A DNA stretch of 64,000 nucleotides from Octopus sinensis. Its lineage: Eukaryota. Both the position numbers and the translations under genes were made by a program. Under the pieces are notes generated by a model. It was not told the DNA's origin and searched no databases. It worked only from the letters and a program-made list of their open reading frames with translations. Location of the stretch: assembly GCF_006345805.1 (NCBI RefSeq), contig NC_043013.1, forward strand, positions 51,956,001 to 52,020,000. The letters are read 5' to 3'. Below are positions 28,962 through 31,391 of this stretch, piece after piece (within the stretch, counting starts at the first letter, position 1; every line of letters begins with the position of its first letter).

Positions 28962-29037
<76 letters not shown>

Positions 29038-29074
29038 TATATTGCTTAATGTATAAAGCGTATATTTTACTAAC

Positions 29075-29173
29075 CAATGAGGACATTTCCTTGAGCTGCT
29101 GCGAAATGCAAAGCTGTCCGTTTCTTTTCATCTGCAGACCTAGCATCAATTCCACTCTCCAGAAACTTCAGGA
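29075..29173 (-). CDS. ANKRD54: ANKRD54-like 99-nt ankyrin exon, downstream copy of a tandem pair
   Basis: Same sequence and splice sites as 30273-30371 (offset 1198). Phase 1 at both ends. Confidence 0.85.
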
Positions 29174-30146
29174 CTGTAATAACAACAACAACGTAAGACA
29201 ATTTTTGGCAAAGTTTCATCACAAAACAGTATGTGTGTGTGTGTGAACACACACACACATGCACACATTGACATCATTTAACGATCTGTTTTCCATGCTG
29301 GCATGGGTTGGACAGTTCGACATGAGCTGGTAAGCCAGAACCCTGTGCCAGGCTTCAACAGGGTTTCCATGGCTACGGTGCCCTTCAAATTGCCAACCCC
29401 TTTACAAAGTGTACCTGGTGCTTTTTATGCGGCACCAGCACCACTTAGTTAGTTGCAAGACAAGAGCCCCTCAACTGAGTTAGTATAGTACTGAGGGAGG
29501 GTGAAGTATGATGGAGGGCCTGGTACAGGTGTCTTGTAGTGGAGACCCATGGCCATCCCTGTTGAAAAAGAGGGGGAAAAGGTGGTGGCAAGGGTGAAGA
29601 GGAAGTGAGTATAAGTGATACAGAGGATTGGACAGAGTGTGTGGATAGGTAAGAAGGGTGGTAGATGGAGAGAGGGGGAACAAGGTGGGTGGTGAATGTT
29701 GGTGGAGGTGTGGTCAGTAATGAATATCAGTTGGAGGAGAAGGTGGAAGAAGTAGGAGTGGCATGAGGTAGGTGGTAGGTGGCAGCACAGGTGATGCAAA
29801 GTATGTGGAGGGGTGGAGTGTGAGAGAGATGCACAGTGCCAGGGATGAAGTCAGAGATGTGTAGGACAAAAATAGTGGGAGACAGAGATAGGTCTCTGAG
29901 CAGGCATCGCCATGACGACTTTCTCTGTCAATGCGATGATCACACGCTACACACCTTCCTTCCAAGCACTGTTATATACAGCAGAAGTGAGCTAGAATGT
30001 TAAAATTTAGTGCCCATGCTCAGCAGAGTTCAAGATTAATTTGTGCCAAGCGGCTTCACTCTGAGTGCTTTAGTTTCGTTACTATGGCAACAGTCTAGAT
30101 ACTTATTCATCAGACCATGTATGGATGGCTGGAGGGATGGATACAG

Positions 30147-30235
<89 letters not shown>

Positions 30236-30272
30236 TATATTGCTTAATGTATAAAGCGTATATTTTACTAAC

Positions 30273-30371
30273 CAATGAGGACATTTCCTTGAGCTGCTGC
30301 GAAATGCAAAGCTGTCCGTTTCTTTTCATCTGCAGACCTAGCATCAATTCCACTCTCCAGAAACTTCAGGA
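30273..30371 (-). CDS. ANKRD54: ANKRD54-like 99-nt ankyrin exon, upstream copy of a tandem pair
   Basis: gttgttattacag|TC CTG AAG...ATT G|gttagt; encodes (V)LKFLESGIDARSADEKKRTALHFAAAQGNVLI, aligning to human [33 protein letters not shown]. Identical to 29075-29173. Confidence 0.85.
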
Positions 30372-31343
30372 CTGTAATAACAACAACAACGTAAGACAAT
30401 TTTTGGCAAAGTTTCATCACAAAACAGTATGTGTGTGTGTGTGAACACACACACACATGCACACATTGACATCATTTAACGATCTGTTTTCCATGCTGGC
30501 ATGGGTTGGACAGTTCGACATGAGCTGGTAAGCCAGAACCCTGTGCCAGGCTTCAACAGGGTTTCCATGGCTACGGTGCCCTTCAAATTGCCAACCCCTT
30601 TACAAAGTGTACCTGGTGCTTTTTATGCGGCACCAGCACCACTTAGTTAGTTGCAAGACAAGAGCCCCTCAACTGAGTTAGTATAGTACTGAGGGAGGGT
30701 GAAGTATGATGGAGGGCCTGGTACAGGTGTCTTGTAGTGGAGACCCATGGCCATCCCTGTTGAAAAAGAGGGGGAAAAGGTGGTGGCAAGGGTGAAGAGG
30801 AAGTGAGTATAAGTGATACAGAGGATTGGACAGAGTGTGTGATAGGTAAGAAGGGTGGTAGATGGAGAGAGGGGGAACAAGGTGGGTGGTGAATGTTGGT
30901 GGAGGTGTGGTCAGTAATGAATATCAGTTGGAGGAGAAGGTGGAAGAAGTAGGAGTGGCATGAGGTAGGTGGTAGGTGGCAGCACAGGTGATGCAAAGTA
31001 TGTGGAGGGGTGGAGTGTGAGAGAGATGCACAGTGCCAGGGATGAAGTCAGAGATGTGTAGGACAAAAATAGTGGGAGACAGAGATAGGTCTCTGAGCAG
31101 GCATCGCCATGACGACTTTCTCTGTCAATGCGATGATCACACGCTACACACCTTCCTTCCAAGCACTGTTATATACAGCAGAAGTGAGCTAGAATGTTAA
31201 AATTTAGTGCCCATGCTCAGCAGAGTTCAAGATTAATTTGTGCCAAGCGGCTTCACTCTGAGTGCTTTAGTTTCGTTACTATGGCAACAGTCTAGATACT
31301 TATTCATCAGACCATGTATGGATGGCTGGAGGGATGGATACAG

Positions 31344-31391
<48 letters not shown>

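Follow-up and report, generated by a model that had tools for sequence, protein, structure and literature searches.

A near-identical tandem duplication carrying one ankyrin-length exon in the assembled ANKRD54 gene of Octopus sinensis

Has the ANKRD54 gene of Octopus sinensis just gained a second copy of an ankyrin-length exon, or is the second copy a product of the assembly? The question is raised by an intragenic duplication at positions 28964-31391 of a 64-kb stretch of genomic DNA (64,000 nt; NC_043013.1, positions 51,956,001 to 52,020,000 of the forward strand), referred to below as the window, whose numbering is used throughout. Two tandem copies with a period of 1198/1197 nt lie side by side within the gene. 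In a global alignment they share ~99.8% identity over 1.2 kb, which is far beyond chance and agrees with an earlier note on this DNA, made from its letters, that had described two nearly identical 1.2-kb units. The analyses below establish that the assembly contains this duplication, that the duplication is derived, young and in frame, and that the sequence it encodes is compatible with an ankyrin repeat. On balance, we favor the view that it is a real, very recent, lineage-specific and probably still polymorphic tandem duplication mediated by (TA)n tracts. The duplicated region is built from the following elements, to none of which a strand is assigned; the short tracts were located with Tandem Repeats Finder (TRF).

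28964..28996, pure (TA)16.5 tract, left of copy 1 on the plus strand and thus on the gene-3' side; no counterpart at the orthologous site of Octopus bimaculoides (TRF and sequence)
28997..30194, tandem copy 1, 1198 nt, consisting of (AG)21, intron sequence with exon 4b, and (TA)24.5 (alignment of the copies, self-megablast)
30147..30194, junction (TA)24.5 tract between the copies (TRF, alignment)
30195..31391, tandem copy 2, 1197 nt, consisting of (AG)21, intron sequence with exon 4a, and (TA)24.5; has lost 1 bp that copy 1 and O. bimaculoides retain (alignments)
31344..31391, (TA)24.5 tract closing copy 2 on the gene-5' side (TRF); a (TG)n(TA)n tract lies at the same place in O. bimaculoides

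Along the plus strand the order is (TA)16.5, (AG)21, U1, (TA)24.5, (AG)21, U2, (TA)24.5 and unique sequence, where U1 and U2 are the exon-bearing intron sequences of the two copies. Identical (AG)21 tracts follow the first two TA tracts (28996-29037 and 30194-30235), and none follows the third. Positions 28973-29642 match 30171-30840 over 670 nt with 0 mismatches; positions 29644-30194 match 30841-31391 over 551 nt with 1 mismatch, 30171 T versus 31368 A, located within a TA tract. The sole indel is 1 bp, a G at 29643 in copy 1 that is missing from copy 2. It lies in a GG run, is the only difference between the copies that is not in a microsatellite, and represents a derived deletion, copy 1 having kept the length found in O. 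bimaculoides. Outside the microsatellites the copies thus differ by 0 substitutions in 1108 nt. The earlier note took three (TA)n tracts as the bounds of the units; all three are present, but they are not equivalent. The junction and right-hand tracts are equally long and have a 1-nt interruption at the same offset, the interrupting base being the single substitution between the copies, whereas the first tract is shorter and pure. There are 0 N bases in the window and therefore no gap separating the copies, and a megablast of the window against itself returned no other near-identical direct repeats of similar size. Each unit also includes a ~240-nt fragment of a dispersed element (29888-30127 and 31085-31324), which is found at the O. 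bimaculoides orthologous site as well. Copies of this fragment elsewhere are ~82-87% identical and are frequently paired in inverted orientation with a few hundred bases between them, an arrangement of long terminal inverted repeats like that of miniature inverted-repeat transposable elements.

The host gene is ANKRD54. A padded query made from three ankyrin-like exons matched XP_029647160.1, a protein of 264 aa annotated as 'ankyrin repeat domain-containing protein 54 [Octopus sinensis]', at 100% identity. Using tblastn and manual placement of splice sites, we assembled a coding sequence (CDS) of eight exons on the minus strand, running from 48624 to 21854. Each row below rests on tblastn and CDS assembly; further evidence is given in the row.

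48571..48624, minus strand, exon 1, Met and 17 aa
35574..35751, minus strand, exon 2, 178 nt
33786..33833, minus strand, exon 3, 48 nt, phase 1/1
30273..30371, minus strand, exon 4a, the upstream copy, 99 nt, phase 1/1, the same as 4b across the whole unit (also alignment of the copies)
29075..29173, minus strand, exon 4b, the downstream copy, 99 nt, phase 1/1, encoding (V)LKFLESGIDARSADEKKRTALHFAAAQGNVLI (also splice sites)
26382..26453, minus strand, exon 5, 72 nt, phase 1/1
25026..25073, minus strand, exon 6, 48 nt, phase 1/1
22435..22559, minus strand, exon 7, 125 nt
21854..22024, minus strand, exon 8, stop codon included

The exons of the window translate exactly to XP_029647160.1, so that the gene had been named correctly from the letters. 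A CDS with either copy of exon 4 alone yields precisely this 264-aa protein, and a CDS with both copies is an open 894-nt frame encoding 297 aa. These lengths replace the 246 and 279 aa given previously, a model from which the 18-aa exon 1 (48571-48624) had been left out. The description of the same 99-nt phase-1/phase-1 exon with intact splice sites in each unit agrees with the assembled CDS: both copies have the acceptor ...ttattacag/TCCTGAAG and the donor CCTCATTG/gttagt (a slash marks the exon boundary), and the intron sequence beside 4a and 4b, read directly, is identical for at least 20 nt upstream and at least 10 nt downstream. The intron between the copies measures 1099 nt. Splicing of 4a to 4b would create the junction CTCATTG/TCCTGAAG, which would encode Val and which the earlier note had correctly predicted from the exon boundaries; a longer form of the predicted two-copy mRNA junction reads ...GGAAATGTCCTCATTG/TCCTGAAGTTTCTGGAG. 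Given identical splice sites and an intron of normal length, exon definition would predict a 297-aa protein from a chromosome that carries the duplication. The exons of the ankyrin block, exons 3-6 (48, 99, 72 and 48 nt), are all in phase 1/1 and multiples of three, so duplicating or skipping any one of them would preserve the reading frame.

When the protein is aligned to ankyrin proteins, both designed and natural, exon 4 falls at residues 94-126: from the first, capping repeat it covers the last part of helix 2 and the loop, and from the second repeat it covers helix 1 and the beginning of helix 2. The ankyrin block of XP_029647160.1 covers residues ~83-170 in Pfam (Ank_2, 60.7 bits; Ank, 58.9 bits), and residues 74-180 align to designed ankyrin repeat proteins (DARPins) and ankyrin. 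As the earlier note had recognized, the exon is symmetric, in frame and one ankyrin repeat long (33 aa from 99 nt, phase 1/1), and a second copy would insert exactly one 33-aa ankyrin period in register. The predicted new repeat, RTALHFAAAQGNVLI-V-LKFLESGIDARSADEKK, would be a chimera, taking helix 1 from repeat 2 and both helix 2 and the loop from repeat 1. With two exon copies the Pfam scores rise from 60.7 to 78.2 bits for Ank_2 and from 58.9 to 74.2 bits for Ank.

A structural model of the 297-aa form was built by AlphaFold2 (AF2) with an alignment of 37 orthologs, which contains no information for the insert; it was used in place of a single-sequence run, which was uninformative with a predicted local distance difference test score (pLDDT) of 46. 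The mean pLDDT of the alignment-based model is 78.4, residues 111-220 lie above 90, and the block means over residues 91-160 are 82, 76, 93, 94, 94, 96 and 97. The model contains an extra helix pair, H104-121 and H124-132, with a less canonical loop in the first copy, where pLDDT is lowest (76). It suggests compatibility of the longer form with the ankyrin fold, and compatibility only.

Is the second copy an innovation of O. sinensis? The earlier note had proposed a comparison with related octopuses, and in O. bimaculoides the locus contains a single orthologous unit (L011 ~9396-10399) with one exon 4 and collinear flanks on each side. Both copies in the window map to this unit at 85-88%: window 31358-31085 and 30161-29888 both correspond to L011 9396-9667, and window 30850-30195 and 29653-28997 both correspond to L011 9720-10399. 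The O. bimaculoides protein, XP_014782123.1, falls into the same 90% cluster as the O. sinensis protein. Exon 4 is single-copy in 37/37 orthologous proteins compared, which include those of Argonauta, a decapodiform-like transcript protein and 34 more from molluscs, an annelid, arachnids and a cnidarian; all 37 align end to end with the O. sinensis protein, and the matches are named ANKRD54. The duplication is derived relative to O. bimaculoides and the other orthologs. The RefSeq model of O. bimaculoides ANKRD54 (286 aa) has a different N-terminus of 40 aa that matches Pfam HTH_48 (L011 3001-15039), and its first exon may be transposon-derived or mis-annotated; the N-termini of the O. sinensis and Argonauta proteins are MNIDK and MNDDK, respectively.

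The age of the event can be bounded from the same comparison. Within the unit, 8.2% of the aligned sites differ between O. sinensis and O. bimaculoides (p = 0.082, K = 0.087), which, with a split quoted as 34 million years (My) ago (PMC10700109), corresponds to ~1.3e-9 substitutions per site per year. At this rate, 0 substitutions in 1108 non-microsatellite sites imply a duplication younger than ~1 My (95% Poisson bound), an age bound by which it would postdate the 2.5-My split of Octopus vulgaris and O. sinensis. The identical (AG)21 tracts and the (TA)24.5 tracts of equal length suggest a far younger event, on the order of thousands of generations, an argument that rests on general microsatellite mutation rates rather than octopus-specific ones. 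The absence of substitutions and the derived state relative to O. bimaculoides agree with the very recent origin proposed in the earlier note.

Near-identity of the copies would also be expected if an older, fixed duplication had been homogenized by gene conversion, its exons being used either constitutively as a pair or in a mutually exclusive manner. Gene conversion acts readily on tandem copies at a distance of 1.2 kb, and the splice signals are intact in both exons. However, conversion would have to span all 1.2 kb, together with the two long microsatellites, each of which is the same in sequence or in length in both copies; RefSeq has no two-exon isoform, O. bimaculoides and Argonauta have one copy, and identical exons, if chosen one at a time, would yield the same mRNA and leave nothing for selection to act on. 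We consider this history highly improbable.

A recent duplication has a plausible route in the sequence itself. One short repeat bounds the region on the left as (TA)16.5 and recurs as (TA)24.5 at the junction and again on the right, and this R-X-R-X-R layout fits slippage or unequal crossover. The ancestral arrangement would have been (TA)n - X - (TA)n, where X comprises the intron sequence, the 99-nt exon 4 and (AG)21. Misalignment of the two (TA)n tracts, through replication slippage, template switching or unequal crossover, would then have produced (TA)n - X - (TA)n - X - (TA)n. The exchange may be placed near the end of the tracts because the junction tract resembles the right-hand one. 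Alternatively, the 33-bp left TA tract could be the start of a partial third copy.

Several points weigh against a real, (TA)n-mediated duplication. The boundary on the gene-5' side has a (TG)n(TA)n tract in O. bimaculoides, but the boundary on the gene-3' side has no (TA)n there, only a short (CT)n, ctctctaactctctctctctaactcccac. The second tract must therefore be assumed to be a gain of the O. sinensis lineage that preceded the event, and 34 My of divergence allow such a later origin; in single-copy alleles the assumed ancestral 3' tract would lie between the (CT)n and TTTCTAACTCCCAC. Of the slippage or unequal crossover between flanking (TA)n tracts that the earlier note had put forward, the layout stands, and the presence of both tracts before the event is a presumption. 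The second copy rests on one consensus sequence, and its 1-bp deletion in a GG run is typical of residual long-read error. Duplicated BUSCOs amount to 5.2% in O. sinensis versus 0.4-0.5% in O. vulgaris and O. bimaculoides (PMC10700109), and this ~10x excess means that uncollapsed sequence is present in the assembly, as context rather than as locus-specific evidence. RefSeq predicts a single 264-aa product with one copy of exon 4; were the duplication real, homozygous and spliced as expected, both junction reads and an isoform of 297 aa should have resulted. Most of the points for and against a real duplication can be reconciled by an allele that is heterozygous or rare.

Some of these observations lend substance to an assembly artefact, an alternative that the earlier note itself had raised and that we hold to be a serious possibility, though not the likeliest one. 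The animal would then have one unit, and the second copy would have been made in long-read assembly, consensus or gap closing, either from a chimeric or erroneous backbone read or by laying two alleles in tandem; it could have passed polishing because short reads map ambiguously to identical copies. The near-identity of the copies is as expected, and one homopolymer-type indel and one microsatellite base fit sequencing error or allelic differences. The BUSCO excess over the sister-species assemblies and the single exon copy in the annotation and in all orthologs point the same way, and false exon duplications are documented for older assemblies (PMC9516828). The copies of a false duplication within one scaffold, however, are usually separated by a gap, and such duplications tend to form at sites of haplotype divergence (PMC9516828), whereas here no N occurs in 64 kb and the copies are too similar for a haplotype bubble. 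Furthermore, a typical PacBio read is longer than the 1.2-kb unit, so that the number of copies should be settled by reads that span it; the 48-bp (TA)n overlap is far too short for a false read overlap; and the breakpoints lie exactly in matching microsatellites, as expected of a biological, repeat-mediated event.

Searches of the assembly bear on the same issue. GCA_006345805.1 is an older build from PacBio reads and Hi-C, of which 2,719,151,902 bases (2.72 Gb) in 13,516 sequences were searched. Full-length copies of the unit occur only at these two places, both on C17, and neither the unit nor the unique flank 31700-32216 has a single-copy haplotig among the sequences searched. All other matches of the unit are confined to its ~240-nt transposable-element fragment. 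Since the 2.72 Gb contain just these two full-length copies and O. bimaculoides has one at the orthologous site, a transposon or dispersed repeat is ruled out as the identity of the unit. A random sample of 200 kb from three chromosomes contained no tandem duplications of at least 250 bp at ≥99% identity, only older direct repeats of 88-97% identity; near-perfect tandem duplications are thus not a pervasive artefact of this assembly, which speaks against an artefact at this locus as well.

Does the longer protein exist? Homology searches for octopus ANKRD54 fragments or isoforms, covering 68-442 aa, returned only the RefSeq proteins of O. sinensis, O. bimaculoides (as a cluster member) and Argonauta, all single-copy. 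They returned no octopus fragment with the 4a-4b junction, in a collection without transcript-derived octopus sequences. An exact look-up of the 297-aa protein in a collection of 15 billion proteins gave no match. Absence of the two-copy protein from public collections would fit an artefact, but this look-up carries no weight: records of this genome are excluded from it, a 65-aa control open reading frame (ORF) within the unit was unmatched, and so was XP_029647160.1 itself. For the same look-up of a 102-aa ORF across the duplication junction, the lack of a match likewise has no weight. A true duplication that still segregates in O. sinensis, with both copies spliced on carrier chromosomes into an ANKRD54 of 297 aa whose fifth ankyrin repeat would be chimeric, is a combination we consider possible but rather unlikely. 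The reality of the duplication in the animal, its mechanism and the use of the second exon are each something that we infer.

Other repeats and rearrangements lie nearby. In intron 1 of ANKRD54, at 46414-47543, a 283-nt direct repeat (46414-46696 and 47260-47543, 98.6% identical) surrounds 563 nt. Because this TA-flanked R-X-R belongs to a dispersed, high-copy element, we rejected it as a second, older local duplication that would have favored a biological process, and the 97% repeats in L018 and L022 were not used as evidence on the same ground. Members of the family are found on many chromosomes at 93-99% identity, often in arrays (2.3 to 4.3 units) whose last copy is invariably partial, 1-283. 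The element looks like a small one with terminal direct repeats, akin to terminal-repeat retrotransposons in miniature (TRIM-like), that multiplied by unequal exchange. Positions 32217-32700 form part of a very abundant and very young repeat, dozens of copies of which, on different chromosomes, are 96-100% identical; this suggests a recently active element. The intron between exons 4b and 5 contains ~2.2 kb without an O. bimaculoides counterpart (26676-28872; L011 10448 and 10452 are adjacent), which holds copies of a sequence resembling short interspersed nuclear elements that recurs many times in the window, and which appears to represent one or more lineage-specific insertions. Finally, 226 nt at 38908-39133 are 99% identical to their own reverse complement and lie at the edge of a TA/TG-rich microsatellite region (~39062-39724); long compound microsatellites of this type are also present at 15536-16273.

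If the duplication is real, it offers a clean natural example of a repeat protein gaining a unit through one microsatellite-mediated duplication of a symmetric, repeat-length exon, seen before divergence. If both copies are spliced, the expansion would be caught at essentially time zero, with the copies identical and the mediating microsatellites intact, and it would affect a protein that otherwise keeps the same number of repeats in all the animals compared. Both alleles would probably still be in the population, making the structural and fitness effects of one added repeat directly measurable. If the second copy is an artefact, it warns that small intragenic duplications in the O. sinensis reference, which is widely used and also serves as a scaffold for O. 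vulgaris annotation, need read-level validation before interpretation. Either way, the class of event is well known, and the interest is local rather than general.

Among known systems, tandem exon duplications are the closest in gene structure; such duplications in animal genes were reportedly described by Kondrashov & Koonin in 2001 and by Letunic, Copley & Bork in 2002. As in those cases, the copies of ANKRD54 exon 4 are adjacent, on the same strand and in one intron context, symmetric (1/1), a multiple of 3 in length and flanked by intact splice sites. The known cases, in contrast, are mostly diverged, mutually exclusive or cassette exons, whereas the ANKRD54 copies are identical and use of the second copy is predicted only. 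Repeat proteins are likewise said to grow through internal duplication of repeat-length units (Bjorklund et al., in the 2006 study 'Expansion of protein domain repeats'). The ANKRD54 unit resembles these in being one 33-aa ankyrin period, offset from the structural repeat so that it would give a helix-1/helix-2 chimera in register. It differs in being a single event in a small, highly conserved protein of four repeats, whose repeat number is constant in 37/37 orthologs; unlike those families, ANKRD54 is not known for expansion.

With false assembly duplications (Ko et al. 2022, PMC9516828) the locus shares near-identical neighboring copies that bear an exon, an unpurged long-read assembly and raised duplicated BUSCOs; unlike them, it has no gap, no second haplotig and no haplotype-level divergence between the copies, and read depth is the defining criterion there. 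Tandem duplications mediated by repeats or microhomology show the same R-X-R-X-R organization, with one dinucleotide repeat at the ends and the junction. In ANKRD54, by contrast, the homology consists of (TA)n, which is of low complexity and not a unique repeat, and the outgroup has a tract at one boundary only. In-frame exon duplication, repeat-length growth and duplication mediated by short tandem repeats are all well described, and ANKRD54 would be an unusually fresh instance of them rather than a new kind of event.

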